This document shows positions 1,672 to 26,150 of a stretch of 26,299 bases of DNA, piece by piece. The notes beneath the pieces are model-generated. The model was not told the DNA's origin. It was given only the letters and a program-made list of their open reading frames with translations, and did not search any database. Numbering within the stretch: position 1 is the first letter of the stretch; each line of letters starts with the position of its first letter. The DNA lies in the NCBI RefSeq assembly GCF_006345805.1, contig NW_021834778.1, positions 1 through 26,299 of the forward strand. The letters are read 5' to 3'. The translations under genes and the position numbers were made by a program. Source of the stretch: Octopus sinensis (lineage: Eukaryota).

Positions 1672-2213
1672 AATTTTTGAAGCTGTAACTAAGGCAATTT
1701 TTTTCAAAATAGGGCCTGAAATCGGAATTTTATCTACGCGTAGTCTTTGAAATATTTCAAAGACTTGATCATCAAATTTATCTTTATCGGCTTTAAATGT
1801 GTCATATTCCTCAGAATAGTATTGCCGTGTTGCAAGAAAGGTACAATATTTCGTTTTATTCTTGATATTGTTCCTTTACTTGTGTTGTACTTTTTCATTA
1901 GTTGCCTCTCAGATAAATTTTTCTTCAAAATTTCTTTAGCAATCTTCAATTTAGTTTCGTAATCCATAACCACAACAATAAAAATATAAATTGAAAATAA
2001 AACAAAAAATAATTAATTTATTATAATTTTATTTTATTTTTAATTCCTTATAAATGATTTTATGGTGCCCCAAAAATTCCATAATTTTTTATCGATTTTT
2101 ATTTTTTTTCTGCCAAAATGTACTTTTGGAATAAAGTGCCCCAAATTGCGGGGGTGCCCCAAAATCCGAGGGTGCCCCACCCCTGGGGTCTGCCCCATTT
2201 TGGGGTCGGACTG
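1672..2213 (-). mobile_element. Tigger/pogo-like DNA transposon, 5' fragment (TIR plus N-terminal HTH region)
   Basis: Near-identical to 6373-6917; end reads TA|CAGTCCGACCCCAAAATGG on the minus strand with TA at 2214-2215; repeated GTGCCCCA subterminal motifs. Confidence 0.85.
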
Positions 2214-2215
2214 TA

Positions 2216-2590
2216 ATTCGAATTTGACTCATCACTTAGTTCTGGATTTCTTCCGTCGAACATTAACAATGCATTTATTTGATCCTCTGTTCTTTCCGAA
2301 TCTCTTTTATCCCCCATAAAAATTTTGAAGGGCGCCCATTTGGTAGTTTCATGTTGTGTAGTGTTATATTTGTATACAATTTCTTGATAAAATTCCTTGA
2401 ATTTCCCTAGCATTCCGTTGCATGCACTTGTAGAGCTAATCCATCTTTTAATTGATTGATTAAACCTACAAATAAATTGACTATAAGAAACCTCTCCACT
2501 TGCCCCTGAACCCAGGGTGCTCTAGGTCGTCCACATATATGAGTGATGTTTAATTCGGAGCACATTAATTCCAAGCATTTATTCGAGTAA
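2216..2590 (-). pseudogene. Ginger-like/rve DDE integrase remnant A (C-terminal part) with a 26-nt intron at 2466-2491
   Basis: Minus strand reads SNKCLELMCSELNITHICGRPRAPWVQGQVER|FNQSIKRWISSTS after removing a GT..AG segment; homologous to 8584-8880. Confidence 0.8.
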
Positions 2591-3200
2591 GCATTCGAGG
2601 TTAATCATAATGAAGAATTTCCCGTGGAAATTGATATGAGTAAAAAAGGACAGAAGGACCGGAGGATTCAATAAGTTCACGGATCGAATGAACGGCCGCT
2701 TCGCCATGTAGTTCTCTACGTTATTTTTTACATCCACATGGATTAATCCACCAATTTTGCGAATAAGAGAACAAGTTCTTCCTCGCTATGTTTGCCGACT
2801 GATCGGCATTTTCTCCAAACATAACTCTGAACGATGCAAACGACATAGCGGAATGTACCGTTGAGTTATATGAACCCTTTATCCTGTCTTTTATTCAAAT
2901 CCATTTATATTTGAGGTTCTCAGATAAACGGGTGGAGGACAACATATATTTCAAGGATTGGTTTAATTTTTCTATCTGCCCCTGCACCCAATGGCACCTT
3001 GTATGACCTCTCACGTGTTTTATCCTGTACTCATCACACAATCGGGAAATCCTATCGTTGACAAATTCCTTCCCTTTGTGTCGTATGAAGAATTATACGT
3101 TTTCCAAGAAATGGTTCGACGCATGTTTTAAACATATAAAAAGTTTTCGGGAAGTGTTACCACCATGGACGCGACATAATACAATTTTTGTAAATAAATG
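2590..3200 (-). pseudogene. Ginger-like/rve DDE integrase remnant B
   Basis: Minus strand: GKRIILHT(fs)GKEFVNDRISRLCDEYRIKHVRGHTRCHWVQGQIEKLNQSLKYML...YNSTVHS; frameshifts and stops; boundaries approximate. Confidence 0.75.
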
Positions 3201-3243
3201 TAATTCAAAAAATATATAAAACACGTTTTAGTTCTTAAGCTAC

Positions 3244-4930
3244 ATGAGTGCTGTTTGGGGAAAATCCGTTGCTTTTATTTGGTGAAAGAAATTCGGGAAA
3301 TTCTGTTAGAGAAACAAACCGTTATTATCTAATTATTAATTTAATTAAAATTCAACCCAGATAGACCTCAATAGTTAAAGCTTTTTCGTCCTGGGGCCAA
3401 TTCTCGTTATCGTTCCCCTGCCCGTGAGGCAACGAGTACTTCTGGCACGACACAGTTGGAAATGGGGATCTCTTACCTTCCTTCCGGTCTTAGCGTGGCG
3501 TTATGGGGTCCACCATGTCAGTTGGAAAATTCCATTCGGATATGGCAACGCTCAGGAGGCACTTAATGCCTACCGAAAAAGGACTTCTAGATCTCAGACC
3601 CTGGGACATCGTCGTCTCTGTCAGATCATTGTGAACAGGATTGAACCTTTCAGAAGGATCTCCCTCGCTTGATTCGGGGATCACGGGGATTATTATAGTT
3701 AACTGGCTTACCCGTCATTGGTCTTAATAAATAAATAAAATAAATAAAGCCGCATGTGCAATCGGGATCATTCTGAAATCCAGTCTAGGCCAATTGATCT
3801 TGATAAAATGATGGTTGGAGTATTTTTCCACATTGACGGTGTTAGGATTTCACTATCGCCACATACTAGGATTAATGAACGTGGAACATCCTGCTGCTAA
3901 AATCCTCGTCCAATTAGCTAATCTCCAGAGACCAAGAAGTAGGGGACAGCACAACATCAGTGGTAATACAATCTCCGTCTCAAACCAGGTGATTATCACA
4001 GCAGAACTCTTCAAAAACGCAGAAAAATTAATCGCCATGAACGTCCATTCAACTTCAGTAATCAACGGCTACAGAGGCGTATAAGTTTATTGAGGAGAGG
4101 ATGTTGATATCGGGGAATGAGATTAATAAGACGTGGTTGATTAACAGTGCTAAGACATCGATGCAGAGTAAAGTCATTGGGCCGTATGAAGAAACGTCTA
4201 AATTGTAGAAATGCTGACTTTTTTGCCCCAATCTGTGTGGAAGCCTGTTCGAAGGTCAAATTAGATGTGGGAGGGCAGACAAGAGTGCCTATCAAGGCAG
4301 TCAACATCTTCAAAGCACATGGGCAGAATGTGAGGGAGTCATTCCTCGCTAACAGATATGCTGTGAACTGCAGAGTGTAGGTGATGTTTTCTGTGATTTT
4401 ATTCCAGATATGGTCAAATCTGTCGCCAATCCTAAGATCGCCTGTTTAGGCTTTGGTTTAATGAAGTCTAAGCTCAAGTTGGGAGTGCAGGTGATGGTGA
4501 ATGATCCTTCCAAACTGGAAGACTGAAAAAGTTTGTGTCTGCCAATGCTATGGCTGTGAGGGAGTATTGAAGTCGGATCTCAAACGGATAGCCAAGCAAC
4601 TGGAGGTGCCAGTGTTTATTTATTAATTCAGCTACTGTGGTGGATGATATGGCCTCATTGGAGAGAGTGAGACATTTTAGTCGTCTTTCGTTGTGAATGC
4701 AGCGCAGGTCAGTCAGCAGTGGGTCGGCGATGATGAATTGATTCTTATTACTGAGTAGTGTCACAATGATGCCATTTGTAGATTAAAAGCGAGGTTGGCT
4801 GCCTCCATTGTAATCAGAAGACCCAATTATTTTGGTTGTTATGAGATCGAGAGGTCAATCCACGACGCTTTGTGTGCGACTAAGCGGATCATGGAGTCCA
4901 AGAGTTGTGTCGTGGGTGGCGGCTGTGTAG
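3244..4930 (+). pseudogene. cct1: T-complex protein 1 subunit alpha (CCT1) pseudogene, intron-retaining, 3'-truncated, with internal deletions and an insertion after exon 1
   Basis: Pieces translate to LLFGERNSGNSVRETN, KSSLGPIDLDKMM, EHPAAKILVQLA, TTSV|VIITAEL, AKTSMQSKVIG, KAHGQNVRES, PKIACLGFGLMKSKLKLGVQV, DLKRIAK, DDELILI, EIERSIHDALCATKRIMESKSCVVGGGCVEA; six GT..AG introns of 25-27 nt; multiple frameshifts and stops. Confidence 0.92.
3361..3748 (+). mobile_element. Insertion within the CCT1 pseudogene ending in a (TAAA)n-like tail; possible 3' end of a LINE
   Basis: GC-richer block separating CCT1 exon 1 from exon 2; ends GGTCTTAATAAATAAATAAAATAAATAAA; no convincing protein motif or TSD. 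Confidence 0.35.
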
Positions 4931-5429
4931 AGGCTGTTTTTTTCAACATTTACAAAACGAATTTTACCATCCACAATCTAAAATTCAATTGATGCATTGG
5001 GCAAACAAATTAATGGTCTATAATCAAGATAACTCAAATCCAATAGTTAAAAATGTATTGAGACAGAATTCCTTAGATTATATAATGGAATATTTGCTAG
5101 AACATATGCTTCAGTTAAATGTATAAAAAATCATTTGTATCAACCAGTTGTAGGAATACTTATTTGAATTCATATTTTAGAATCCTTTATATGACTTTAT
5201 TAATAAAAGAAACTAATTAACTAATTAATTTTCTAAGTCCAGAGCCTTCGAAAATCCTTATATGTAAATATGTTTTAAGTAGATCGTGTCTTTCCACAAC
5301 TATTTATTACGGAATTTTACACACAAATTACAATATGAAGATCCAGTTGGATGTGATTAGAAAATCTTTTTATTATTATTTTTGATCCAAAATTTGTATA
5401 GTTAATTAAAGTAATTAATTATATGATTT

Positions 5430-6917
5430 GTTGTCTTTTCCGTCTAAAAAAGGTCGGTATGTTTTAACCCCTGAATTGCGTATCATAAACATTATGTTCA
5501 TGTCTTCGCATTCTCCATCAATTGGTTTCGTTAACAACTTGATCTAAATGTTCATCTGTTAGACAGTTTTTGTTGCATAAGAATCACGGTTCCTGTCGAT
5601 TTTCTTCCAACAATTAACAATACTTTTAGCATCTATTTTCTCCCATCCTTTTGAAATTAGCATCATAACCTGACGCAAATTTAATTTACCAATAGAATGT
5701 GTAAAATCGTTTTCGAAATCTTGAAAACATAAAATTCCATTAAGAAAGAGGAATAATAATCTTTAAAAATCTTGATTATTCCCATATCCAAAGGTTGTAA
5801 ATAGGGCGTTGTATTTTTCGGCAAAAATAAAAATTCGATGTTCGAACATTCGCAGTTTTATGGCATCCCGCATTGTCAAGTATTTAATATATTTTTCTGT
5901 TGTTTTTGCAAAACGATTCATTTATAAGTGTAAGCCAACTCATAAAAGTCTTTCCAGTCATCCATGCATTTTGAGAAGATGAATACAATAACCCGAATCT
6001 TGAACATCAAAATTTTTTAGACACCGAGGTTTTTTATATTTTCCAATAATCAATGGATTAAGTTTTTCCCCGATTAAACTGCAGCATAGAAGAACAGTGA
6101 GTCTTTCTTTCCCTTGTTATAACAAAACACGGTTCGCCTTGTTCAACAAATGATTTTTGAGGAGTTCTTTTTATAAAAAGCGCAGTTTCATCACAATTAA
6201 ATATATTCTCAGGTCCATTATTTAATACTTTCTGGTCATATTTTTCAAAATAATTTTTCACATAAGATAAATCACATGAAGCTTTTTCACCACATATTGA
6301 CTTGAATTGAAGTTCATGCCGCAATTTAAATCTATCAAGCCACCCATTGGAAGCTTTAAAAGAAGTAAATCCAATTTTTGAAGCTGTAACTAAGGCAATT
6401 TTTTTCAAAATAGGGCCTGAAATCGGAATTTTATCTACGCGTAGTCTTTGAAATATTTCAAAGACTTGATCATCAAATTTATCTTTATCGGCTTTAAATG
6501 TGTCATATTCCTCAGAAATAGTATTGCCGTGTTTTGCAAGAAAGGTACAATATTTCGTTTTATTCTTGATATTGTTCCTTTACTTGTGTTGTACTTTTTC
6601 ATTAGTTGCCTCTCAGATAAATTTTTCTTCAAAATTTCTTTAGAGCAATTCAATTTAGTTTCGTAATCCATAACCACAACAATAAAAATATAAATTGAAA
6701 ATAAAACAAAAAATAATTAATTTATTATAATTTTATTTTATTTTTAATTCCTTATAAATGATTTTATGGTGCCCCAAAAATTCCATAATTTTTTATCGAT
6801 TTTTATTTTTTTTCTGCAAAAATGTACTTTTGGAATAAAGTGCCCCAAATTGCGGGGGTGCCCCAAAATCCGAGGGTGCCCCACCCCTGGGGTCTGCCCC
6901 ATTTTGGGGTCGGACTG
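5430..6917 (-). mobile_element. Tigger/pogo-family transposon; frameshifted transposase (about 6677-5440) with CENP-B-like HTH and DDE_1 domain
   Basis: Motifs IPISGPILK..FKASNGWLDRFKLRH, IFNCDETALF, PLIIGKYKKPRC, NAWMTGKTF, LDNAGCH, QPLDMGII, VNCWKK; 5' TIR ends at 6917 next to TA; 3' TIR not found. Confidence 0.9.
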
Positions 6918-7049
6918 TATATTCTATTTTGATTTTTGTACTATTTTATTGTTCATTTTAGTAAAATATTTATCTTTATAATCTTGAGATGAAATTAGTA
7001 TTATATCTGATATTTTTTTAAAGAGAAAAACATAAAATTATTAATTGTT

Positions 7050-8409: not shown

Positions 8410-9420
8410 ATTTTGGGACTCCTATACTTGCAGAAATCATTCGATAAGTCATATTATGATTAAAAATGCAAATTGTTAAGTACGTCTTCTTGCATTTTAT
8501 TACTTCTTCGCTTTCTTCTTGATACACAAAATCTACTTCTTCGTATTCATTTTCCTTATCGTAAAAGGATTTCATAATTACCATTAAAAGCCAATAAGAC
8601 TGCATAATGTAATCATCAGTTTTTTTTCATATCCCACTTCCATTAAAATGTTAAATGGAATATGCTTTGTAGTGTCATGTTTTGAATTATTATATTCGTC
8701 GACAATTCTTTTAATAATTGCATGATATTCTCCAAACATTCCATTTGAAGCGCTTGTAGAAGAGATCCATCGTTTTATAGATTGGTTAATCTTAAAGTTA
8801 ACAAAATAAATATACCGTTTTACCTGACCTTGTAATCCAAAGTGCACGTGGTCTTCCACATATGTGCTTAGTGACAAACTTCGTGCACATTTTCTCCATC
8901 ATATTGTTTTTGAACTCCTTTCCATTATCTGTTTGCAAGATTAATGGAGCTCAAATCAATCATAAAAATGTTTTCAATAATAGGCACTGTTTTTCTGTGG
9001 CGCATTTGGTTCTAGCAAGTTCTACAACCCCATATTTTGAAAAAGAGTCAATCAAAAAGAGAATCTGGATAAATCGTAATACCCATTTAAAGGTGTTATT
9101 TATTTCTGATCTTCTTAAATCGATCAAATCAGCAATGTATCTATCTCTTGGGCCTTTTGCAATAATAGGAGTGATAACCGGCCTTGTAGCTAGCAATTTT
9201 CGGACTGAAATCGAATAATTTAACTAAATACCTGACAATGAGCACATTTTTCAATTATTTTGCTAGTCTCTCTTCGAGTTGCACTATATATCTTTCCCTT
9301 AAGCATAGAAACATTTTTCTCCTTCCAATTGATAATCTATATTAATTTTGTTTGATAACATAATAATGCATCAGTAATAATGTATGCAGCCGAATCTTCT
9401 CCGAAATTAATATCCGGACT
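8410..9420 (-). pseudogene. Ginger-like/rve DDE integrase remnant C with H2C2 zinc-binding region and micro-introns
   Basis: CAHCQ|..LATRPVITPIIAKGPRDRYIADLIDL, LIDSFSKY, LILQTDNGKEFKN, CGRPRA..QGQVKR|.NQSIKRWISS; GT..AG segments at 9205-9231, 8791-8815 and possibly 9065-9082. Confidence 0.85.
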
Positions 9421-9579: not shown

Positions 9580-10180
9580 CGATGTCCTCGACTTACATGA
9601 TGAGGTCCTTAAAACCTTCCCCCCAAAAAAAATTAAAAAAAAATTTTTTCTGCGTTTTGGTCAAAATGAACAACTACGATGTCCTCGACTTACATGATGA
9701 GGTCCTTAAACCTTCCCCCCCAAAAAAAATTAAAAAAAAATTTTCTGCATTTTGGTTAAAATGAACAACTACGATGTCCTAGACTTACATGATGAGGTCC
9801 TTAAAAAACCTTCCCCCCCAAAAAAATTAAAAAAAAATTTTCTGCATTTTGGTTAAAATGAATAACTACGATGTCCTCGACTTACATGATGAGGTCCTTA
9901 AAACCTTCCCCCCAAAAAAATTAAAAAAAAATTTTCTGCATTTTGGTTAAAATGAAAACTAAATGTCCTCGACTTACATGATGAGCTCCTTAAAACCTTC
10001 CCCCCCCCAAAAAAAATTAAAAAAAAATTTTTTCTGCAGTTTGGTTAAAATGAACACTACGATGTCCTCGACTTACATGATGAGGTCCTTAAAACCTTCC
10101 GCCAAAAAATCAAAAAATTTTTTCTGCATTTTGATTAAAATGAACAACGCGGATGTCCTCGACATTCATGATGAGGTCCA
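9580..10180 (+). repeat. ~96-bp tandem repeat, 6 full units plus a partial unit
   Basis: Unit heads CGATGTCCTCGACTTACATGATGAGGTCC at about 9580, 9677, 9772, 9869, 9961, 10060 and 10150; 3 units plus a partial in copies 1 (508-820) and 3 (15790-16105). Confidence 0.9.
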
Positions 10181-10870
10181 TTAAAACTTTCCAGGCAAAA
10201 TCTCACGTATTAAGAATATCCTTGATGAAAACGACAGCGAGAATATTAACAATGATGAACTCCCAATTATTCGCGATAAAGAAATTCAATTCATCCTATG
10301 TTTTTCTCTTTAAAATTAATGCATATATCATTAACGACCATGAATCAAAATTAAAGCTATTATCATAGAGTGTGCCATTAACAGATTTTGAAAAACCACT
10401 TTGATAGTTGAAACCACATTAGCACAATCATTAACACAATTTACCACAAATTGACGCACGACCTTGAATAGAGTGTGCAATTAACAGATTTTGAAAAACA
10501 CTTTGATAGTTGAAAACACATTAGGACAATCATTAAACAATTACCACCCATTGACAGCGCAATCAGAAGAATTTGCGTAAAAATATTAACTATTTAGTTA
10601 AGTTTTTCGTAAAGATTGAATTTATTTTCGGTATTCCTCTTTTCCTAACTTTTTTATTATTCAAAAATAATTTTTTCAATAGATAACCGAAGGAGGGAAG
10701 ACGACCTTAAGAAAAGAAGTTTTTCGTAAAGATAGAATTTATTTTCGGTATGCCTCTATCCTAAACTTTTTTATTATTCAAAATAATTTTTTTAATAGAT
10801 ACCGAAGGAGGAAAAACGAAGCTGAAGAAAAAACGGTCAGCTTAATAAGGTAATTAATCAAATCTTTTTT

Positions 10871-11125
10871 GTGTGTCGCTTTCTTGCCTGTCGCTTTTTT
10901 GTGTGTCGCTTTCTTGCCTGTTGCTTTTTTATGTGTCGCTTTCTTGCCTGTCGCTTTCTTGCCTGTCGCTTTCTTGCCTGCCGCATCTCTACCTGCCGCA
11001 TCTCTGCCTGCCGCATCTCTGCCTGCCGCATCTCTGCCTGCCGCATCTCTGCCTGCCGCATCTCTGCCTGCCGCATTTCCGCCTGCCGCATTTCCGCCTG
11101 CCGCATCTCTGCCTGCCGCATTTCC
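10871..11125 (+). repeat. 15-bp minisatellite, 17 units
   Basis: GTGTGTCGCTTTCTT / GCCTGTCGCTTTTTT units grading into GCCTGCCGCATCTCT / GCCTGCCGCATTTCC units. Confidence 0.95.
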
Positions 11126-11150
11126 GCATTTCCCCCCATCTCACCCAAAT

Positions 11151-12157
11151 AAAAAAAGAAAAAAAAGGAAATTACAAAGAAACACGAAAAAATCAAATAT
11201 AAAAAGTTAACAAATAAAAAAAAGAAAATAAAGCCCAAAAAAAAGAAAATAAAAAAAAGAAAAAAAACTTTAAAAATTAAAAAGAAAATAAACAAAAAAA
11301 GAAAAAAAAACTTAATAAATAAAAAAAAGAAACTAAAAGACAAAAAAAGAAAAAAAATTTAAAAATAAAAAAAATTTAAAAATAAAAAAAAATTTAAAAA
11401 TAAAAAAAAATTTAAAAAAAAAAAAATTAAAAAATAAAAAAATAAAAAAACTTTTAAAAAATAAAAAAATGAAATAAAAACACAATAAAAATCGAAAAAA
11501 AAACACAATAAAAATCAAAAAATTAAAAAACTAAAAAAAAAAAAAAAAATAAAAAAAAAATCAAAAAAAGTAAATAAAACACAAAAAAAGAATAAAAAAA
11601 TAAAAACACATAAAAACAAAAAATAAAAAACAAAAAATAAAAAAATAAACAAAAAAAATTCAAAAAATAAAAAAAAATTTAAAAAAATAAATGAAAAAGA
11701 AAAAAAAATTTAAAAAATAAAAAAAGAAAATAAAAACACAATAAAAAACAAAAATAAGAAAAAATTCAAAAAAGAAAAAAAAGGAAATTACAAAGAAACA
11801 CGAAAAAATCAAATATAAAAAGTTAACAAATAAAAAAAAGAAAATAAAGCCCAAAAAAAAATAAAAAAAAGAAAAAAAACTTTAAAAATTAAAAAGAAAA
11901 TAAACAAAAAAAGAAAAAAAAACTTAATAAATAAAAAAAAGAAACTAAAAGACAAAAAAAAAAAAAAAATTTAAAATAAAAAAAATTAAAAATAAAAAAA
12001 ATTTAAAAAAAAAAATTTAAAAATAAAAAAAAATTAAAAAATAAAAAATAAAAAAACTTTTAAAAAATAAAAAAATGAAATAAAAACACAATAAAAATCG
12101 AAAAAAAAACACAATAAAAATCAAAAAATTAAAAAACTAAAAAATAAAAAAAGAAAA
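11151..12157 (+). repeat. A-rich low-complexity tract with an internal ~616-bp tandem duplication
   Basis: Anchor GGAAATTACAAAGAAACACG at 11167 and 11783, with collinear downstream text. Confidence 0.85.
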
Positions 12158-15100
12158 CACGTTGTTTGTTGTTGTGGTGTAATTTTTTTTCAATTTATCT
12201 GTTATTTTTCATATCTTTTGTATAATTTAATACATTATCGAGTTGTCTTAGTTGTTACTATTTCTTTCGTCGGTATTTCTGTTATCTTTCTTAATACTTC
12301 TTTCCTATTTTTACATGTCATCCCTTTTCCACGATCCATACCATGTGGTAAATGCAGTAAAATTAACTGCCGCAAAAACGGCATTTACTGCGCCAAATGC
12401 CATGCTTACTTCCATATTGGATGTCTCAAGATTTCGAAGAAATCCGTTTCCAGCATCCCAATATGGCACTGTAACTCTTGCCTGGCAGCTGCCTCATTCC
12501 ACGACACACCCACATTGTTTGATAGTTCCCATGATCAATCTCCCAATATACTAACTTCATCGAACGCAATACTATCCTACCTATCAAGATATCGTCATTC
12601 GAGAAGCATCCCTATCCGTTTACCGAAACCAGCTCGTCCAGCAGCTGCGGAGGCCTTGTCTCATCTGATATCCAGAGCTATGTCCTCAAACAGGGACGAG
12701 GATGGGCAAAAGCGTTCTGCTTCCCCTTTTTCGGACTTGGCCTGACCGTGGAGATAAATTGCCCGGGAATTTCACTTCCAAACTTAAAAGATCTATTTCT
12801 TCTTACTTCCCCTTTTCCATCGACACATTAATATCTCAGGAAAGCCACTCACTGTCAAAACCAAGACTAAACCACAACGAAAACCTACGCAAGAGAGTAC
12901 GTTCCAAGTTAATGTCGGGCGACTTCTCGGCCGCCTTGAGAATATTTCCTCAGACGATAAAGTTGCGAGGGTGACGAACAAACATTACAGTCCCTCCTAG
13001 CAAAACATCCCACTCCATCTTCTCCTAAACAGTACCAACACCAAGCCCAGATCATGATTTTGTGCATGTCGATAAAGACGAAGTGTTGAGAGCCCTGAAG
13101 TCTTTTCGCCCTAGTAGCAGCGGTGGAATCGATGGCCTCCGTCCAAGTCATATCATGGATCTGGTCTCCTCTTCAGCTTCCGCAGCCGGAGAACGTCTTT
13201 TGACGGATATTTGTGGTCTAATGAACGCATTCCTCGAAGGGTCTCTGTCTGATTTCCCACGCTCCCTTTTTCTCTCGGGTAACCTGACCGCGCTGAATAA
13301 AAAGGACGGTGGAATCCGTCCCATATCCGTCGGTAATGTTTTCAGGAGACTGGCGGCTAAGATCGCTTGCGCCAGGTCTTCACATCTGTTTCCGAAAATT
13401 TTCCATAACATACAGATGGGTGTCGGTGTTAAAGGTGGCTGCGAAGCCACTGTCCACGCCGTGAGGGATTTTACAGAGTTTTCACACTCTGCTTATAACG
13501 ACTGTATTCTTGCTAATTGGACATGAAAAATGCTTTTAATTGCATCGACCGCTCATACTTCCTTAAAGAATGCAGCAAACATAACATTCCATTACTCCCG
13601 ATGGCCAGCATGTGCTACGGTTGCACACCTGAACTAATGATAGACGGACACACGATCTTGTCCTCCTCTGGGGTCCAACAAGGTGACCCCCTTGGTCCAT
13701 TACTCTTCTCCATGGGCGTTAACCCAACAGCACACGCCGTAAAATCACCGCTCAACGTTTGGTATCTGGATGACATTACTATTGGTGGTCCTGCTCACCA
13801 AGTCATCTTGGATATAGAATCAATCGCTGTAAGTCTGAACAAAATTGGATTACAGTTGAACCCTTCAAAATGTGAGATCATAAACCTCAACGCCAACGAG
13901 GAAGATTTCGCGACTAGTGGAAAAATATCACTCAATCTTACCGGGTGGTATTATAACCAGGAAAGGGTCGCTTGAAGTCTTAGGATCTCCCATTTTCTCG
14001 GAAGGAATCGAGAAAATACTGTCCGGAAAATTATCCACTTTTGAGCTCATGTCAAGCAGGCTATCCATCCTGGACGCTCACGAAGGGTTTTTCTTGTTGA
14101 AAAACTTCATATCACTCCCCAAGCTACAACACGTTCTCCGCTCTGCCCCCTGCTTTATAAACCCTGAACTTCTCAAAGAACTGGAAACAGGGCTGAAACA
14201 CAGTGCCGAAAATCTCTGCAACATTCGTTTTGACGAAGCCTCGTGGACCCAAGCCACGCTTCCAATACGATTCGGAGGCATTGGTCTCGGTCCCCAGCAG
14301 ATATTGCATTACCCGCTTTCCTCTCTTCTCGATTGTCGTGTGACTCACTGGTGGTTGCTGTTCTCCCCCTTTCCACTGAACGCAACGCATCCTCCTGGTA
14401 TCAGATGGCAATCGAAATTTGGTCGAACAAAGGCCTCAAGACACCTGCTAACTCATTCTCACAGAGATGTTGGGACGACCTGTATTCTATGTCAATTTAC
14501 CACCACTTGGAAGAGGTCTCTGATCAATCTCGTCTTGCATGCCTTAGAAGTGCTTCACAAAAACAATCCGGAGCGTGGCTCAATGCATGTCCTATCCTTC
14601 AGTCGGAAACAAACTGGACGACGAGACATTGCGAATTGCAATCTCCTTACGCCTTTGCATGAAGATCTGTCGCCAGCACCGCTGTAGTTGCGGGGCTTCC
14701 GTTGACGAATTCGGACGGCACGCTCTCTCATGCAGACGCAGTGCAGGCCGGTTTCCAAGACATCACGCAATGAACCTAATTGTCAAGAACGCTTTGCATG
14801 CAGCTGGTTTCCCGGCACAGCTGGAGCCTCCTGGTCTCATTCGCACAGACGGAAAAAGACCTGATGGGATAACAATTTTCCCGTACACCAACGGAAGTGC
14901 CTTGTTTGGGACTGCGCTTGCACCGACACCTACTCAGAGACAAACCTGATCGCCTCAGCTTCCTCTCCAGGATATGCTTCACAGAACTACGAAAAAATTA
15001 AAATATTCAGAGCTCAAGGACAGGTTCATAGTGCAACCGATTATTGTGGAGTCATCTGGAGTCTTCGGTCCGGAATCAATCTCTTTTATTAGGAAACTTG

Positions 15101-15257
15101 GATCCCTGATCTCGGTTCAGACGAAAGATAGAAGGGAGACCGAATGGCTGTTTCAACGCCTTTCAACAACCGTTGTCAGAGGTAATAGCCACGCTATCCT
15201 TTCTGCTCTTAAGCAACCTTAATTAACTTATATTTTTTTTTTATGAAAATATTAATT
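12158..15257 (+). mobile_element. CRE-clade non-LTR retrotransposon (PHD finger - RT - CCHC finger - restriction-like endonuclease); single ORF at about 12315-15222 broken by small indels
   Basis: RT motifs DGLRPSHI, KKDGGIRPISVGNVFRRL, QMGVGVKGGCE, DMKNAFN, GVQQGDPLGPLLF, WYLDD, GLQLNPSKCE, QATLPIRFGGIGL; C-terminal CSC..H..SC, RHHAMN, GKRPDG..WD, PIIVESSGVFG; candidate TSD AAAAAAGAAAA at 12147-12157 and 15258-15268. Confidence 0.88.
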
Positions 15258-15686
15258 AAAAAAGAAAATAAAACAAAAAAATCAAAAAAGTAAATAAAAC
15301 ACAAAAAAAAAGAATAAAAAAATAAAAACACAATAAAAAACAAAAATAAAAAAAACAAAAATAAAAAAATAAAACAAAAAAAAATTCAAAAAATAAAAAA
15401 ATAAAATAAAACACAAAAACCGCAAAAGACAAAAAAGAAAATAAAAAACAAAAATCGAAAAAATAAAAAAAGAAAAAATAAAACACAAAAAAAAAAAAAA
15501 AATTTTAAAAATAAAAAAAGAAAATAAAAACACAAAAAAGCAAAAAATAAGAAAATAAAAAACAAAAAAAAATCAAAAAATACAAAAAAAAGTAAAAATA
15601 AAAAAAAGAAAAAAAAATTTAAAACATAAAATAAAAAAAAATTTAAAACATAAAAAAAGAAAATAAAACCCAAAAAAATCAAAAAA
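15258..15686 (+). repeat. A-rich tract; continuation of the tract interrupted by the CRE element
   Basis: TCAAAAAAGTAAATAAAACAC...GAATAAAAAAATAAAAACAC matches about 11551-11610, the sequence expected after the insertion point. Confidence 0.8.
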
Positions 15687-17124
15687 TCTTAATAATAAAA
15701 TGGTATGGTGTGTGTCTGTCTGTCTGTCTGTCTGTCTGTGTGTCTGTCTGTCTGTCTGTGTGTGTCACACCAACTTCAAATTGGCAATACGATGTCCTCG
15801 ACTTACATGATGAGGTCCTTAAAACCTTCCCCCCCAAAAAAATTAAAAAAAATTTTCTTCTGCGTTTTGGTCAAAATGAACAACTACGATGTCCTCGACT
15901 TACATGATGAGGTCCTTAAAACCTTCCCCCCCAAAAAAATTAAAAAAAATTTTTTCTCTGCATTTTGGTTCAAATGAACAACTACGATGTCCTCGACTTA
16001 CATGATGAGGTCCTTAAACCTCCCGCCAAAAAATCAAAAAATTATTTTCTGCATTTTGATTAAAATGAACAACGCGAATGTCCTCGACATTCATGATGAA
16101 ATCCATTAAAACTTTCCAGGCAAAAATCTCACGTATTAAGAATATCCTTGATGAAAACGACAGCGAGAATATTAACAATGATGAACTCCCAATTATTCGC
16201 GATAAAGAAATTCAATTCATCCTATGTTTTTTCTCTTTAAAATAAATGCATATATCATTAACGACCATGAATCAAAATTAAAGCTATTATCATAGAGTGT
16301 GCAATTAACAGATTTTGAAAAACCACTTTGATAGTTGAAACCCATTAGCACAATCATTAACACAATTTACCACAAATTGACGCACGACCTTGAATAGAGT
16401 GTGCAATTAACAGATTTTGAAAAACTTTGATAGTTGAAACCACATTAGGACAATCATTAACACAATTTACCACCCATTGACAGCGCAATCAGAAGAATTG
16501 CGTAAAAATATTACTATTTAGTTTAGTTTTTCGTAAAGATAGAATTTATTTTCGGTATGATGCCTCTTTTCCTAAACTTTTTTATTATTCAAAAATATTT
16601 TTTCAATAGATAACCGAAGGAGGGAAGACGACCTTAAGAAAAGAAGTTTTTCGTAAAGATAGAATTTATTTTCGGTATGCCTCTTATCCTAAACTTTTTT
16701 ATTATTCAAAAATAATTTTTTTAATAGATAACCGAAGGAGGAAAAACGAAGCTGAAGAAAAAACGGTCAGCTTAATAAGGTAATTAATCAAATCTTTTTT
16801 GTGTGTCGCTTTCTTGCCTGTCGCTTTTTTGTGTGTCGCTTTCTTGCCTGTCGCTTTTTTGTGTGTCGCTTTCTTGCCTGTCGCTTTTTTATGTGTCGCT
16901 TTCTTGCCTGTCGCTTTCTTGCCTGTCGCTTTCTTGCCTGCCGCATCTCTACCTGCCGCATCTCTGCCTGCCGCATCTCTGCCTGCCGCATTTCCGCCTG
17001 CCGCATTTCCGCCTGCCGCATCTCTGCCTGCCGCATTTCCGCATTTCCCCCCATCTCACCCAAATAAAAAAAAAAAAAAGGAAATTACAAAGAAACACGA
17101 AAAAATCAATATAAAAAGTTAACA
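15687..17124 (+). mobile_element. Non-autonomous Helitron-like module, copy 3
   Basis: A|TCTTAATAATAAAATGG start; 3 VNTR units; 16 15-mer units (16801-17040); fused at AACA to a helicase fragment. Confidence 0.75.
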
Positions 17125-19012
17125 TACAGAGAAGCCTGTTTTAAATTAGGTCTTTTAGAGGATGATAATCACTGGAATCAGACTTTAACAGAAGCTGAAC
17201 TTGCAGATTCCCCATCGCGACTAAGGTATTTATTTACTTTGATGCTAGCCCATTGTGGGTTAGCAAATCCACAACACTGTGGGAAGGTCACCGAGAAAGC
17301 ATGTGTGAGATATATTAAGAGAGAAGAATAGATTGAGTTTCGATGCAGAGATTTTCAACATTGGATTAATCATGATAGATAGATTGCTAATATCTATCGT
17401 TGGTAAGAGTGTAGTGAATTTGGTTTTATAATCAGCGATATTCATAATATTAATTCATTTGATGAGCATTATAATTTAGAAGAACTTCGAACAATAGTGG
17501 AAGAAAGAGAACAAAGCTTAACCACTGGCCAGTTGGAGGTATACAGAGAAAATTAATCGAGTCATCATCCAGAAGAAAACGGTTCTAATCATTTTTATTG
17601 ATGCACCGGGTGGAACAGGTAAGACCTATCTTCTAAATCTATTATTAGCTAAGGTCAGAAGCAAAAATAAACTAGCTTTAGCAGTTGCATCTTCTGGAAT
17701 TGCTGCAACTCTTTTAGATGGCGGTCGAACCGCACATTCGACATTCAACATTCCGTTGAATCTCTCATATACTACTGAACCGGTTTGTAATGTAAAAAAA
17801 TTCAACTACGGGTAATAGAATTATGCATTCTAGGTTAATTGTTTGGGATGAATGTACGATGGCTCATAAAGGCGCATTCGAAGCAGTTGATCGAACATAT
17901 AGAGATATCAAGAATTGTAGCGACCATTTATTTGGGGGAGCAATAGTTGTATTGGCAGGTGATTTTAGACAGACGCTGCCAATTATTCAAAGAGGGACGC
18001 CTGCGGATGAATTGAATGCCTGCCTCAAATCGTCATATTTGTGGACACACGTGAAAAAGGTAAGCTTAGATGTAAATGTACGTGCACATTTACAAGGCGT
18101 TAATAGCATATTCCCACAAATCCTTCTAGATATTGGAAATGGGGCAATCACTTCAGAAATGCAAGACCAGAAAATTAGGCTACCGGAAGAATTATGTATT
18201 TTCGTAGAAACAGCAGAAGAATTATTGAATGCCGTCTATTCCGAACTATCTGAACACTACGTGAATTTCGACTGGCTGCGTGAACGAGCTATATTAGCTC
18301 CACTTAATGATGAGGTACTTAATATAAATTTAGATTTATTAATGAAAATCCCTGGCAGAGAAAGAATATATAAATCGGTCGACGTTATTATGGACCATGA
18401 AAGGGCCTGCGAATATCCTGTAGAATTTTTAAATTCCTTAGATCCATCTGGAATGCCGAATCATCTATTGAAATTAAAAATAGGTGTACCGGTTGTGTTA
18501 CTACTCCGCAATCTTGCGCCACCTAAATTATGCAATGGTACAAGGTTGGTTATCAAGAATTTGATGGCTAACGTAATAGAAGCGACAATATTAACAGGTA
18601 ATTACAGAGGTGAGGATGTTTATATCCACGAATACCTCTGATTTCGGAAGAATTACCTTTTAGATTTAAGAGACTACAATTTCCGCTGAAGATAAGTTTT
18701 GCTATGACAATAAACAAGGCCCAGGGACAGTCTTTAAAGGTAGTAGGCTTATTTTTAGAGAACGAGTGCTTTTCACATGGCCAGCTGTATGTGGGGTGCT
18801 CAAGGGTAGGTAGAAGAGAAAATTTATTTATTTTGCCAAGGATGGACGGACTGCAAACATCGTTAATCCACAGGCCTTAGAATAAGGTTATATCAAAGCA
18901 GGTCGCATTATATATCTACATAAATTTATAGTTATTTAAGGAAACTGCGAGCGTAGCGAGCAGGCCTCCGCAGGAGCTAGCTCGCAGTGAGCGAAGCAAA
19001 CTGCTGAGCTAG
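17121..19012 (+). mobile_element. 5'-truncated duplicate of the Helitron 3' end (helicase region, hairpin, CTAG)
   Basis: Nearly identical to 23988-25878; PIF1 motifs LIVWDECTM, LAGDFRQTLP, LCNGTRL, MTINKAQGQS; ends CTAG|T. Confidence 0.93.
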
Positions 19013-19410
19013 TAAGAAAATAAAAACAAAAAAAATTAAAAAATAAAAAAAGTTAAAAAAAATAAAACACAAAAAAATCAAAAAATAAGAAAATAAAAAC
19101 AAAAAATTAAAAAATAAAAAAAGTTAAAAAATAAAAAAAAAAAAGAAAATAAAACAAAAAAAGAAAAAAATTAAAAATAAAACAAAAAATTTAAATAAAA
19201 AAAAAAAACTAAAACACAAAAAAGAAAAAAATTAAAAAATAACAAAAAATTTAAATAAAAAAAGAAAAAAAAACACAAAAAAAGAAAAAAAATATAAAAA
19301 TAAAATAAAACACAATAAAAAACAAAAAAAAAAAAAATAAAACACACAAAAAAAAATTCATAAAATAAAAAAAAAATTTTAAAAAATAAAAAAAGAAAAT
19401 AACAAAAAAA
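19013..19410 (+). repeat. A-rich low-complexity spacer between the duplicated Helitron 3' end and the autonomous Helitron
   Basis: Almost purely A with T/C punctuation and few G; same style as 11151-12157 and 15258-15686. Confidence 0.85.
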
Positions 19411-19874: not shown

Positions 19875-22800
19875 ATGGTGGGTAGTCAGAATATGGAGAG
19901 TTTCACCGAAGATATCGTGGATGCCAAAACAAACGAACAAACTGAGCTTGGGGGGAGTGTAAGTAATGTAGGTGCGGGCATAGGTAATATAGGTGTAGGA
20001 AATGCAGGAAATGTGGGCGCAGGAAGTGTAGGTAGTGTAGGTGCATGCGTAGGTAATCTAGGTGCAGGAAATGTAGGTAGTGTAGGCTTATGTAATGTCA
20101 GAGAAAATAAGATTACTCATCAGTTGTCAGAAGATCATCAATCGATCCGTTTCGATGAAAATAACTTCAGTAAAGAGGTATTAATATTATATTTATTTTT
20201 AGTGTATGGAAACGGATTACCTATTGAGAAACAAAGAATATTTGGAAAATACACAGGTTTTAGATAATTTATGTAGCACGAAACGTAAAAAAGTTAGTGT
20301 AGGAAATAATAATTTTAAACGATATAGTTTCGATGATATGAGTGTTAGTCTAGAATCTAGACTAGACTCTAGATATAAATTTAACATTAAAGTAAATAGT
20401 TCAAATGAGACGTTTTCGATCTCAAATTTTAGACGAGAAAAGAATAGATTGCGCATGGCTATGAAAAGGGCAGCCGAGTCACAAGATCAAAAGAACATCG
20501 ACAAGAATGCAACAGATTAAGAGCAACTATAAGAAGGAGGCAAGAGACCGATGATATGAGGAATTTCAGAAAAGAACAAGATAGAATGGGGAAGGCTATT
20601 ACTAGGGAACAAGAGTCACAAGAACAGAGGGAACATAGACAAGAACAAGATAGAATGGGGAAGGCTATTAGTAGGGAACAAGAGTCACAAGAACAGAGGG
20701 AACATAGGCAGGAACAGATAGAATGGGGAAGGCTATTAGTAGGGAACAAGAGTCACAAGAACAGAGGGAACATAGGCAGGAACAAGATAGAATGGGGAAG
20801 GCTATTAGTAGGGAACAAGAGTCACAAGAACAGAGGGAACATAGACAAGAACAAGATAGAATGGCAACGGCTATTAGTAGGGACAAGAGACAGAAGAACA
20901 AAGGAACATAGGCAAGAGCAAAATAGAATGGGAACTGCTATTAGTAGGGAAAAAGAGACTCAAGAACAGAGGGAACATAGGCAAGAACAAGATAGAATGG
21001 CAACGGCTATTAGTAGGGAACAAGAGACTCAAGAACAGAGGGAACATAGACAAGAACAAGATAGAATGGCAACGGCTATTAGTAGGGAACAAGAGACAGA
21101 AGAACAAAGGGAACATAGGCAAGAGCAAAATAGAATGGGAACTGCTATTAGTAGGGAAAAAGAGACTCAAGAACAGAGGGAACATAGGCAAGAACAAGAT
21201 AGAATGGCAACGGCTATTAGTAGGGAACAAGAGACTCAAGAACAGAGGGAACATAGGGAAGAACAAGATAGAATGGCAACGGCTATTAGTAGGGAACAAG
21301 AGTCACAACAACAAAGGGAACATAGACAAGAACAAGATAGAATGGCAACGGCTATTAGTAGGGAACAAGAGACAAAAGAACAAAGGGAACATAGGCAAGA
21401 GCAAGATAGAATGGGAACTGCTATTAGTAGGGAACAAGAGACTCAAGAACAGAGGGAACATAGGCAAGAACAAGATAGAATGGCAACGGCTATTAGTAGG
21501 GAACAAGAGTCACAACAACAAAGGGAATGCCGACGAGATCGGAACACAAGAAGAAATTCAGTTAGGAGGAACCAACTAACTCAGGATGAACATCAGACAG
21601 AAAATCGACTACGAGTTTCACGCAGGAATAGTAGGGTATCAAATTCTATTGGTTTAGAAACACTGGATTTAATTATAATAGGGGCATTGAGTATAGAAAT
21701 TTAGGTAATGTAGGTGCTTTAACGGAGATATGTACTTTTTGTTTAGCTATGAAATTTAAGGGGGAAACTATCGGAATGTGCTGCAGTCGCGGAAAGGTAC
21801 GTTTACCAGTTTTAGACCCGCCTCCTGAGCCTCTTTTAACACTGTTGAGGAATGATACACCATCATCTAGGCACTTCGTTGATAATATTCGCAGGTACAA
21901 TAATGTTTTTCAGATGACATCTTTTGGTACAAGTGGAAATTTCAATCCGACGGGCTATATGCCCACATTTAAGGTACTTGGGCAAGTGTATCACAGGATG
22001 GGTTCACTCCTTCCAAGTGAAGGCGAGGATTTTAAATTTTTACAAATTTACTTTATAGATAATCACGAAGAACAATCTAACCGAAGATGTCTAGCAGATT
22101 CAAGACTACGAGGCAACATTATTAGTTCGTTGCAAAATATGTTGCAAATGTGCAACACGTATATTTCATCTTTTAGATCTGTTCTGAGATCCACAGCAGA
22201 TGAAGATTGTAAGGTAATTATACATGCAGATAGGACACCTGCAAATGAACATAACCGTCGATACAACGCACCAACGTCAAACCAGGTTGGAATTCTAATA
22301 GTAGGTCAACACTATGACTCGAGAGACATAATAATAAACAAGAGATCCACTGGATTAATGAGAATTTCAGAGACACATCGGTCATATGATGCACTTCAGT
22401 ACCCATTATTATTTCCGAGAGGAGAGGATGGGTACAATTTTAAGGTAATGCATTTTAATCCGTCGACTGGTTTAACTACTACTAAAAAAACCAGTTGTAT
22501 GGAATTTTATTCTTATAGGTTGATGATAAGAGAGCAGGAATTCAACATTCTACATCGTACAGGCCAGTTATTTAATCAGTTTATTGTAGATATGTATGCG
22601 AAAATAGAGGCAGAGAGACTTCTCTACATTCGGTTGAATCAGCGGAACTGAGAGCAGAAGAGTATATACATCTAAGAGATGCCATAATGAATGACGGTAA
22701 TGTGTCTAATGTAGGTCAAATGGTTATTTTGCCTTCGTCATTCACGGGAGGACCAGATATATGCATGAGCGAACTCAAGATGCTATGACATACGTTAGAA

Positions 22801-25749
22801 ATTACGGAACTCCGGATCTGTTTATCACTTTTACGTGTAATCCGAATGGCCAGAAATTAGTGATAACATATTTGTAGGACAAAAGGTCGAGTATAGACAA
22901 GACATCATAGCACGTGTTTTTAAACAAAAAGTCGATAAGATGATTGATCTTCTATGCAAGGGACAGATTTTTGGGAAGACAAGATGCCACATGTATACAG
23001 TAGAGTGGCAAAAAAGAGGTTTACCACATATACATATATTAGTATGGTTAGTAACTAAAATTAGGCCTACAGAGATAGACGATTGCATACGGGCAGAATT
23101 GCCAAATCCAAATGAAGATAGAGAATTATACGAGATCATCAAAAGAAATATGATACATGGTCCGTGTGGCATATATAACAAACATCACCGTGTATGCAAG
23201 ATGGTAAGTGTTCTAAAGGGTACCCAAAAAACTTAATAATTAACACGCAAACAGGTGAAAATGGATTTCCATTTTACCAGAGAAGGGGAGCAGCTGAAGG
23301 AGGATATACTGCAACCCTCCACGAAGGAAAAGAAAATGAAATAACAGTTGATAACAGATGGATAGTGCCTTATAATCCACTATTAAGTAAGATTTTTGAT
23401 GCACATATCAATGTGGAATTTTGTAATTCAATTAGATCAATTAAATATGTATGTAAGTACATTAATAAAGGGTCGGATCAGGCAATCTTTTCAATAGAGC
23501 AACGTGATGAGCCAACTTTTTATCAACATGGACGCTATATCTGCAGTAATGAAGGAGCATGGAGAATTTTTGGATATCCGATTCATGAAAGATATCCATT
23601 GGTTATGCATTTAGGGGTTCACCTGGAAAATGGGCAAAGAATTTATTTCACAGAGCAGAATGCACGCAATCAAGTTACAAATGCAAGAAATTCAACTCTG
23701 ATGGCATTCTTCGAATTATGTCGTACAGATCAATTTGCAAAGACTATATATTATGTTGATGTTCCTAGATATTATACATGGGATGTCGCGGGGAAGAGAT
23801 TTAAGAGAAGGATAAGAGGAAATCCAGTAAATGGACATTCAGGAATTGTAAGTGCAGATGCATTGGGTAGAGTATATACAGTGCATCCAAATAATTTTGA
23901 ATGTTATTGTGTTAGGTTACTTTTGCACACCGTACGAGGGCCAGAATCTTTCACTGATCTACGGACTGTAGATGGAGTACTCTGCGAAACATACAGAGAA
24001 GCCTGTTTTAAATTAGGTCTTTTAGAGGATGATAATCACTGGAATCAGACTTTAACAGAAGCTGAACTTGCAGATTCCCCATCGCGACTAAGGTATTTAT
24101 TTACTTTGATGCTAGCCCATTGTGGGTTAGCAAATCCACAACAACTGTGGAAAGGTCACCGAGAAAGCATGTGTGAAGATATATTAAGAGAGAAGAATAG
24201 ATTGAGTTTCGATGCAGAGATTTTCAACATTGGATTAATCATGATAGATAGATTGCTAATATCTATCGTTGGTAAGAGTGTAGGTGAATTTGGTTTTATA
24301 ATCAGCGATATTCATAATATTAATTCATTTGATGAGCATTATAATTTAGAAGAACTTCGAACAATAGTGGAAGAAAGAGAACAAAGCTTAACCACTGGCC
24401 AGTTGGAGGTATACAGAGAAATTAATCGAGTCATCCAAGAAGAAAACGGTTCTATCATTTTTATTGATGCACCGGGTGGAACAGGTAAGACCTATCTTCT
24501 AAATCTATTATTAGCTAAGGTCAGAAGCGAAAATAAACTAGCTTTAGCAGTTGCATCTTCTGAAATTGCTGCAACTCTTTTAGATGGCGGTCGAACCGCA
24601 CATTCGACATTCAACATTCCGTTGAATCTCTCATATACTACTGAACCGGTTTGTAATGTAAAAAAAAATTCAACTACGGGTAATAGAATTATGCATTCTA
24701 GGTTAATTGTTTGGGATGAATGTACGATGGCTCATAGGCGCATTCGAAGCAGTTGATCGAACATATAGAGATATCAAGAATTGTAGCGACCATTTATTTG
24801 GGGGAGCAATAGTTGTATTGGCAGGTGATTTTAGACAGACGCTGCCAATTATTCAAAGAGGGACGCCTGCGGATGAATTGAATGCCTGCCTCAAATCGTC
24901 ATATTTGTGGACACACGTGAAAAAGGTAAGCTTAGATGTAAATGTACGTGCACATTTACAAGGCGTTAATAGCATATTCCCACAAATCCTTCTAGATATT
25001 GGAAATGGGGCAATCACTTCAGAAATGCAAGACCAGAAAATTAGGCTACCGGAAGAATTATGTATTTTCGTAGAAACAGCAGAAGAATTATTGAATGCCG
25101 TCTATTCCGAACTATCTGAACACTACGTGAATTTCGACTGGCTGCGTGAACGAGCTATATTAGCTCCACTTAATGATGAGGTACTTAATATAAATTTAGA
25201 TTTATTAATGAAAATCCCTGGCAGAGAAAGAATATATAAATCGGTCGACGTTATTATGGACCATGAAAGGGCCTGCGAATATCCTGTAGAATTTTTAAAT
25301 TCCTTAGATCCATCTGGAATGCCGAATCATCTATTGAAATTAAAAATAGGTGTACCGGTTGTGTTACTCCGCAATCTAGCGCCACCTAAATTATGCAATG
25401 GTACAAGGTTGGTTATCAAGAATTTGATGGCTAACGTAATAGAAGCGACAATATTAACAGGTAATTACAGAGGTGAGGATGTTTATATCCCACGAATACC
25501 TCTGATTTCGGAAGAATTACCTTTTAGATTTAAGAACTACAATTTCCGCTGAAGATAAGTTTTGCTATGACAATAAACAAGGCCCAGGGACAGTCTTTAA
25601 AGGTAGTAGGCTTATTTTTAGAGAACGAGTGCTTTTCACATGGCCAGCTGTATGTGGGGTGCTCAAGGGTAGGTAGAAGAGAAAATTTATTTATATTTGC
25701 CAAGGATGGACGGACTGCAAACATCGTTTATCCACAGGCCTTAGAATAA
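19875..25749 (+). CDS. Helitron Rep (HUH endonuclease)-PIF1 helicase, about 1950 aa after repairing roughly 10 frameshifts
   Basis: Zn-binding CTFCLAMKFKGETIGMCCSRGKV; HUH motifs LFITFTCNP, EWQKRGLPHIH, KYVCKYINKG; helicase motifs [49 protein letters not shown]; start codon uncertain. Confidence 0.9.
20572..21528 (+). repeat. Coding 69-bp (23-aa) tandem repeat, 14 units, in the Helitron protein N-terminus
   Basis: ATAGAATGG anchors at 20581, 20650, 20718, 20787, 20856, 20923, 20992, 21061, 21130, 21199, 21268, 21337, 21406 and 21475; unit about QDRMATAISREQETQEQREHRQE. Confidence 0.95.
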
Positions 25750-25808
25750 GGTTATATCAAAGCAGGTCGCATTTATATATCTACATAAATTTATAGTTAT
25801 TTAAGGAA

Positions 25809-25878
25809 ACTGCGAGCGTAGCGAGCAGGGCCTCCGCAGGAGCTAGCTCGCAGTGAGCGAAGCGAACTGCTGAGCTAG
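25809..25878 (+). other. Helitron 3' terminal hairpin region and CTAG end
   Basis: GCAGT(25850-25854)/ACTGC(25866-25870) stem around GCGAAGC; ACTGCGAGC(25809-25817)/GCTCGCAGT(25846-25854) inverted repeat; CTAG at 25875-25878. Confidence 0.85.
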
Positions 25879-25925
25879 TATAAAATAATTAATATCTATT
25901 TGATTAATATTTTAATAAGTAATTT

Positions 25926-26150
25926 ATGGACTTCTAGTCTGTAAATTGAATTCTTTAGAGGAAACTTTTAAATGAATCTCTGTCGCTGAATCATGTTCTT
26001 AATACATTAATTTTAAAAATAGTTAATTCATTAATATTTAAAGATAATCCCATACTTGTGTACTTTGAAAGTTATAATAAAATATTAGAAAATATAAAAT
26101 TTTTGATTGGTCGTGTAAATCACCTGATCTTGATTCAATTAAGCTTTTTT
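25926..26150 (+). pseudogene. Possible highly decayed Tc1/IS630-like transposase C-terminal remnant
   Basis: IFKDNP then (frameshift) DWSCKSPDLDSIK, resembling the Tc1 FQQDN..WP..SPDLNPIE motifs; many stops. Confidence 0.45.

Follow-up and report, generated by a model that had tools for sequence, protein, structure and literature searches.

The 26,299-nt stretch of DNA analyzed here (contig NW_021834778.1 of assembly GCF_006345805.1, positions 1 to 26,299 of the forward strand; "the window") contains a damaged copy of the gene for CCT1 (TCP-1 alpha), surrounded by the debris of transposons and satellites. Between 3244 and ∼4965 of the + strand, peptide blocks of CCT1 are spread across all three reading frames. 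They are interrupted by six GT..AG segments of 25 to 27 nt and by one longer segment near the 5′ end, all of which appear to be introns at positions shared with the CCT1 genes of distantly related animals. The copy itself is dead; it is a 3′-truncated pseudogene and not a functional member of the CCT1 family.

Identity and extent of the CCT1 remnant

We stitched the peptide blocks into a conceptual protein and compared it with the protein collection. The best matches were animal TCP-1 alpha proteins (50 to 54% identity) in a flat list of scores. Every named match among the best 120 was TCP-1 alpha and came from an animal, the remainder being unnamed products. Over the aligned residues, the remnant is 59% identical to frog or bivalve CCT1. 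The CCT-alpha equivalog model TIGR02340 gave 418 bits for the conceptual protein, whereas the models of the other CCT subunits (eta, delta, epsilon, beta, gamma, theta, and zeta) gave at most 162 bits each, and the assignment to CCT1 among its paralogues is therefore secure. The score of 418 bits lies below the equivalog cut-off of TIGR02340 (800 bits), and there is no intact full-length frame of ∼550 amino acids. The window holds no second CCT1 copy. The protein collection yielded neither a closer CCT1 relative nor a parent, and the best anonymous transcripts have none of the indels of the window copy.

The original prediction had regarded 3244 to 4930 as CCT1. This stretch is indeed derived from CCT1, but homology reaches ∼4965, and many breaks interrupt the reading frame on the way. 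At the 5′ end, a 1-nt shift separates the frame of the ATG at 3244 from that of the homologous N terminus (ENPLLLFGERNSGNSVRETN), and the frame that the ATG opens stops at 3283. A TATA-like motif (aaatatataaaa) is found at 3210 to 3222, ∼25 to 30 nt upstream of this ATG, which suggests that the duplication took in the very short promoter and 5′ untranslated region of the parent gene. At the 3′ end, homology stops ∼4 codons before the ancestral exon 10/intron 10 boundary. Exons 11 and 12 (residues ∼430 to 555) are nowhere in the window, and AT-rich or transposon sequence is found in their place. The coordinates of all features are collected in Table 1.

Table 1. Features of the CCT1 remnant and of its surroundings. 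Ancestral sites are numbered by frog TCP1 codons; gain is the change in alignment score when the segment is removed; hyphens within peptides mark the intron position.
Feature	Position	Strand	Ancestral site	Gain	Residues joined and remarks
Exon 1 remnant	3244..3320	+			Homologous ENPLLLFGERNSGNSVRETN from 3260
Putative intron 1, 429 nt, GT..AG	3321..3749	+	Site 1, codon 22, phase 1	+45	Donor exactly on the ancestral site; two codons missing on the acceptor side
Exon 2 remnant (ACAIGIILKSSL/PIDLDKMMVG)	3750..3819	+			1-nt deletion near 3788; without DDI
Putative relic mini-intron, 26 nt	3820..3845	+	Site 2, between 50 and 51 (G50-D51), phase 0	+4	KMMVG-DFTI
Exon 3 remnant	3846..3962	+			TNDGA deleted with a frameshift near 3861; 1-nt insertion at 3929
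Putative relic mini-intron, 26 nt	3963..3988	+	Site 3, between 93 and 94 (V93-V94), phase 0	+27	TTSV-VIITAEL
Exons 4 and 5, fused remnants	3989..4183	+	Site 4, codon 126, phase 2 (lost)		Deletion at ∼4073-4082 of (R)LACK(E) and the site; frame shifted
Putative relic mini-intron, 25 nt	4184..4208	+	Site 5, codon 163, phase 2	+28	KVIG(P)NADFF
Exon 6 remnant	4209..4380	+			Frameshift and loss of 3 residues near 4372, directly before the donor
Putative relic mini-intron, 27 nt	4381..4407	+	Site 6, codon 224, phase 1	-2	(D)MVKSVANPKIAC; 8 residues from the split codon to KIAC, as in frog
Exons 7 and 8, fused remnants	4408..4605	+	Site 7, codon 266, phase 2 (lost)		Deletion at 4521/4522 of 35 residues (frog 262-296) and the site; further 1-nt deletions near 4562 and 4597
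Putative relic mini-intron, 26 nt	4606..4631	+	Site 8, codon 325, phase 1	+14	ATG(A)TVVDD; ATG-ATVV versus frog ATG-ATVC
Exon 9 remnant	4632..4754	+			1-nt deletion near 4664; in-frame TAG at 4678
Putative relic mini-intron, 27 nt	4755..4781	+	Site 9, codon 366, phase 2	+19	LILIT(E)LKARLA; in-frame TAG if read through
Exon 10 remnant (LKARLAASIV...GGGCVEAVFFNIYKTNF)	4782..4965	+			Homology ends near the exon 10 boundary
Site beyond the truncation			Site 10, between 430 and 431, phase 0		
Site beyond the truncation			Site 11, codon 485, phase 2		
Decayed integrase-like fragments	2099-3041, 8584-9196	-			GI.H...P..PW(V)QGQ(I/V)E motifs
Tc5/pogo helix-turn-helix fragment	6058-6408	-			
Non-long-terminal-repeat retrotransposon remnant	12218-14949	+			PHD-finger open reading frame, then fragmented reverse transcriptase frames
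Helitron Rep/PIF1-helicase gene	21749-25552	+			Helitron_like_N, PIF1, Pif1_2B; 2-4 frameshifts

Mini-introns in the remnant

The six short segments begin with GT, end with AG, and measure 26, 26, 25, 27, 26, and 27 nt (mean, 26.2 ± 0.75 nt), a narrow spread around 26 nt of the kind seen in dicyemid mini-introns, here for six segments of one locus. When each segment is cut out, the flanking CCT1 blocks come to lie in one frame. The original prediction had proposed these segments and joins, and their termini, lengths, and joins all hold; the acceptor for the seventh donor, which it saw at 3321, lies at 3749. Its description of the introns as uniformly ultra-short is accurate for the six, but the first intron, at 429 nt, falls outside it.

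To avoid circularity, we aligned frog TCP1 with positions 3150 to 5150 using a custom protein-to-DNA aligner in which frameshifts are permitted and the placement of GT-AG introns is free. Five of the seven introns were recovered exactly by this approach: those at 3963-3988, 4184-4208, 4606-4631, and 4755-4781 and, as a phase 1 first intron, that at 3321-3749. Frame and homology were restored upon removal with a clear gain in score in five of the seven cases. All seven introns are of the GT..AG type; four of the six mini-introns begin with GTA, and by our reading of the sequence a TNA-like motif precedes the AG by 6 to 13 nt in all six. The GC content of the introns is 31 to 42%, versus 44% for the exons.

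Intron positions are shared with bilaterian CCT1 genes

For comparison, the exons of CCT1 loci were mapped exactly in a frog (Nanorana), a bivalve (Solemya), a hemichordate (Saccoglossus), a cephalochordate (Branchiostoma), and a rotifer (Adineta), all of them bilaterian. Eleven introns are common to the first four, with identical codon and phase, and the rotifer has kept 8 of these 11. The window copy spans nine of the sites, and seven of them (sites 1, 2, 3, 5, 6, 8, and 9) are occupied at the same codon and in the same phase. Deletions have taken out the remaining two (sites 4 and 7). With 24 GT..AG segments of 25 to 27 nt in 1,216 nt, the probability that at least six of eight ancestral sites would be matched exactly by chance is 1.6 × 10−9.

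The positions of the human TCP1 introns, which the original prediction had listed (V22 phase 1, G50-D51, V93-V94, 163 phase 2, G224 phase 1, A325 phase 1, and N366 phase 2), agree with the mapped frog sites, frog standing in for human, and all seven introns of the window copy coincide in codon and phase with those of the four bilaterian genes. Since the positions are common to frog, bivalve, hemichordate, and cephalochordate, the comparison indicates that they are ancestral at least to Bilateria; to call them ancestral for animals, as had been suggested, extrapolates from a gene set that is bilaterian throughout. The window copy thus shares the codon and phase of its seven introns with the canonical animal TCP1/CCT1 structure of 12 exons and 11 introns, from which it differs in the deletion of sites 4 and 7 and in its truncation before sites 10 and 11. 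It also differs in intron length, as the canonical introns measure roughly 0.3 to 7 kb in frog, lancelet, acorn worm, and bivalve, compared with 25 to 27 nt for the six mini-introns.

Decay and origin of the copy

With all seven introns removed, alignment to frog and bivalve CCT1 calls for nine frame corrections (near 3788, 3861, 3929, 4073/4082, 4372, 4521, 4562, 4597, and 4664), and the remnant has one in-frame stop codon. The residues lost are VM, DDI, TNDGA, LACK, three before intron 6, and 262 to 296; TNDGA is part of a block that is invariant in 20 of 20 aligned orthologues. Several of the deletions (VM, DDI, the three residues before intron 6, LACK, and the 35 amino acids) abut or include intron boundaries. 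Any transcript of the remnant, spliced or not, would contain premature stops.

The copy combines retained introns and disabling lesions with an absence of poly(A) and of other retrocopy hallmarks. Because the introns and the 5′ end are kept, the 3′ end is missing, and poly(A) is absent, it is best explained as an unprocessed pseudogene that was copied at the DNA level and not as a retrocopy, and the six short segments would then be relic introns. It resembles unprocessed pseudogenes of other housekeeping genes in its kept introns and 5′ end, frameshifts, nonsense codon, deletions, truncation, and transposon-rich setting.

In the history that we propose, exons 1 to 10 of CCT1 would have been copied at the DNA level, together with the exon-intron structure of the parent, in an animal whose spliceosomal introns had shrunk to ∼26 nt. 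Intron 1, formerly short, probably grew to 429 nt when a retroposon ending in an A-rich tail inserted into it. An (AATAA)n-like tail is located at ∼3722 to 3747, at the 3′ end of intron 1 just before the acceptor; apart from this A-rich tail, the insert is not repeated elsewhere in the window, nor was a clear target-site duplication seen around it. The copy would then have acquired its frameshifts, nonsense codon, and multicodon deletions and lost its 3′ end amid transposon debris. In the functional parent, which would lie outside the window, an ordinary U2-type spliceosome would remove the mini-introns, presumably by recognizing a reduced GTa...AG signal, the branch region being a few A residues that precede the AG. 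We base this splicing step on published work on dicyemids and myxobolids.

Repeats and transposons around the remnant

The surroundings of the CCT1 remnant are filled with transposons, as had been predicted, and comprise Helitron, long interspersed nuclear element (LINE), integrase, and satellite debris. The Helitron Rep/PIF1-helicase gene lies at 21749 to 25552. A partial copy of the Helitron at 17121 to 19023, 6.9 kb upstream, corresponds to its 3′ half and is 98.5% identical. The nearest proteins to the Helitron open reading frame (ORF) in the collection reach ∼53% identity at best (rotifer, insects, and frogs), and an exact-sequence look-up of the 520-amino-acid Helitron ORF returned no identical record. 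When Rep/Hel proteins were aligned with positions 21500 to 26000 using the same intron-aware aligner, no mini-introns of 25 to 27 nt were found, only frameshifts. Directly upstream of the Rep gene, a 69-nt tandem repeat (∼14 copies, 91% matches) occupies 20430 to 21527 on the + strand and encodes a 382-amino-acid ORF composed of 23-residue REQE(S/T)QEQREHRQEQDRM(A/G)TAIS repeats.

The non-LTR (long terminal repeat) retrotransposon remnant is flanked by A-rich arrays at 11187 to 12157 and 15257 to 15700 and ends in a 0.4-kb (AAAAAAAT)n-like tail. A further A-run of 0.4 kb is found at 19017 to 19410; A-rich arrays in the window measure 0.4 to 1 kb. A composite block of 1 to 1.4 kb is present in three copies with 89 to 94% identity (411 to 1401, 9867 to 11212, and 15684 to 17124). 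The block includes a run of (TGTC)n, a satellite with a 97-nt unit, a duplicated unit of 101 nt, and arrays with 15-nt units (TGCCTGCCGCATCTC / TGTCGCTTTCTTGCC), and might represent a nonautonomous element with internal tandem repeats.

The CCT1 remnant begins ∼200 nt from the nearest integrase-like fragment; the integrase-like ORFs tested had no Pfam match. A 560-bp direct repeat with 98% identity (1672 to 2227 and 6373 to 6932) brackets the pseudogene. We considered these repeats as an LTR pair, but they lack TG..CA ends as well as terminal inverted repeats, and their flanks are unrelated. Capture of the CCT1 fragment by a retroelement was dropped as an explanation, the bracketing repeats not being LTR-like; the two copies probably stem from separate insertions of a single short repeat.

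Alternative readings and the source lineage

Taken as a whole, it is very probable in our judgment that the locus is a decayed, unprocessed CCT1 pseudogene from an animal with introns of ∼26 nt, most likely a dicyemid. Several observations weigh against this. The segments at 3820-3845 and 4381-4407 gain almost nothing in alignment score; this marginal support is due to the frameshifts that adjoin both, and the case for them rests mainly on their position at ancestral sites, termini, length, and composition. All 14 splice dinucleotides (seven GT and seven AG, from 3321 to 4781) are intact although the exons carry ∼17 indels, which distinguishes the remnant from the usual unprocessed pseudogenes and is mildly unexpected for old neutral sequence. 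A strong bias toward deletions relative to substitutions may be a simple cause. Finally, in seven of the nine frameshifts a single base is deleted, in some cases within a short homopolymer, a pattern that could partly reflect assembly error, of which the few frameshifts in the Helitron copy might be a further sign. Nevertheless, we find it highly improbable that the gene is functional and that its frameshifts and gaps are long-read assembly errors. Frameshift density is ∼10 per 1.3 kb in the remnant (the nine corrections and the out-of-frame ATG) versus 2 to 4 per 3.8 kb in the adjacent Helitron, an ∼10-fold excess which argues that assembly error is not the main cause of the damage. Such errors also fit poorly with the multicodon deletions (the invariant TNDGA, LACK, and the 35 residues), the in-frame TAG at 4678, and the absence of exons 11 and 12 in favor of other sequence.

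The copy could also be a semiprocessed retrocopy of a partly spliced pre-mRNA, in which introns 4 and 7 were lost by aberrant splicing and not by deletion of DNA. The deletions that hold the two missing sites both begin 12 to 14 nt upstream of the expected donor, and by our reading the site 4 deletion may end exactly on the expected acceptor; inefficient splicing of ultra-short introns is mentioned in a recent myxobolid study, as cited there for microsporidia only (PMC13644364). Against such an origin stand the seven introns that were kept, the missing 3′ exons, the lack of a poly(A) tail and of a target-site duplication, and the end of the 35-residue deletion, 30 codons past the ancestral acceptor. 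LINE-primed copies are, moreover, usually truncated at the 5′ end, the opposite of the missing 3′ end observed here. We regard a retrocopy as very unlikely.

As for the source of an unprocessed pseudogene with such introns, the original prediction named dicyemids, with myxozoans as an alternative, and the literature bears out both. Dicyema introns measure 26.2 ± 1.9 nt (n = 16) and occupy conserved positions in genes of fast-evolving proteins (Aruga et al. 2007, PMC2222250). The median intron of Dicyema sp. is 27 nt (Zverkov et al. 2019, PMC6543705, which also cites Ogino et al. 2010, Gene 449:70, for dicyemid introns in 40 genes), and the genome of Dicyema japonicum has 36.7% GC, 48.9% repeats, and many LINE copies (Lu et al. 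2019, PMC6736024). The window, with a GC content of 35.5%, resembles dicyemids in its uniform introns of ∼26 nt with GT(a)...AG signals at conserved positions, in its fast-evolving protein, and in its base composition, about half of the published dicyemid genome being repeats. It differs in that the dicyemid cases are expressed genes and the window copy is a decayed pseudogene with a first intron of 429 nt. The mean intron length, GC content, and repeat load fit D. japonicum best, and on these grounds we lean toward a dicyemid source.

The same anatomy might have arisen in a myxobolid myxozoan such as Henneguya. Myxobolid introns have medians of 22 to 27 bp (27 bp in Henneguya; 22 bp in Thelohanellus and Myxobolus rasmusseni), with reduced GTa...AG signals and conserved junctions in housekeeping genes (Hadjez et al. 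2026, PMC13644364). With the 36% repeats of Myxobolus honghuensis (PMC8855578), the transposable-element richness of the window is compatible with a myxozoan as well. The GC content of Henneguya is lower (29%) than that of the window, however, and one would probably expect a decayed myxozoan gene to retain less than the 59% identity seen with CCT1 of frog and bivalve. No lineage-specific relative stood above the flat list of bilaterian matches, although T. kitauei proteins are in NCBI, which argues weakly in the same direction. A myxobolid host seems to us unlikely. A source in any lineage other than dicyemids and myxobolids is less probable still. Neither the CCT1 remnant nor the Helitron has a close relative in the protein collection, so that a third lineage may be considered, but we think it improbable that the window derives from an animal lineage beyond these two. 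Scans of the window with Rfam and for tRNA genes found no RNA marker gene, and a literature search on Helitrons in Dicyema or Myxozoa found nothing useful. A nonanimal protist with introns of ∼25 nt can be set aside almost entirely. Ciliates such as Paramecium have introns averaging 24.8 nt, as cited in PMC2222250, but every named match among the best 120 is an animal protein, all seven introns agree with the bilaterian set in both position and phase, and the single in-frame stop (TAG) gives no hint of TAA or TAG used as sense codons.

Implications

Ultra-short introns at conserved positions in the compact yet repeat-rich genomes of parasites have been described before (in 2007, 2010, 2019, and 2026). 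The CCT1 remnant is one more instance of this known phenomenon, in a dead copy, and serves as an example and not as a new principle. If the window did come from a third lineage, introns of under 30 nt would have arisen a third time, independently, in Metazoa. The locus is of practical use in annotation: such genes will be miscalled by gene finders that do not allow introns of <30 nt, and pseudogenes of this kind are recognizable only with aligners that handle frameshifts and mini-introns together.

At the level of a single gene, the remnant illustrates how intron positions can remain fixed across bilaterian evolution while intron length falls to ∼26 nt. This collapse of introns would have taken place in a genome in which dead copies of genes and abundant transposons are still tolerated. 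As the short introns coexist with both, simple genome streamlining is argued against as the cause of intron shrinkage, a point that publications on dicyemids and myxozoans have made before.

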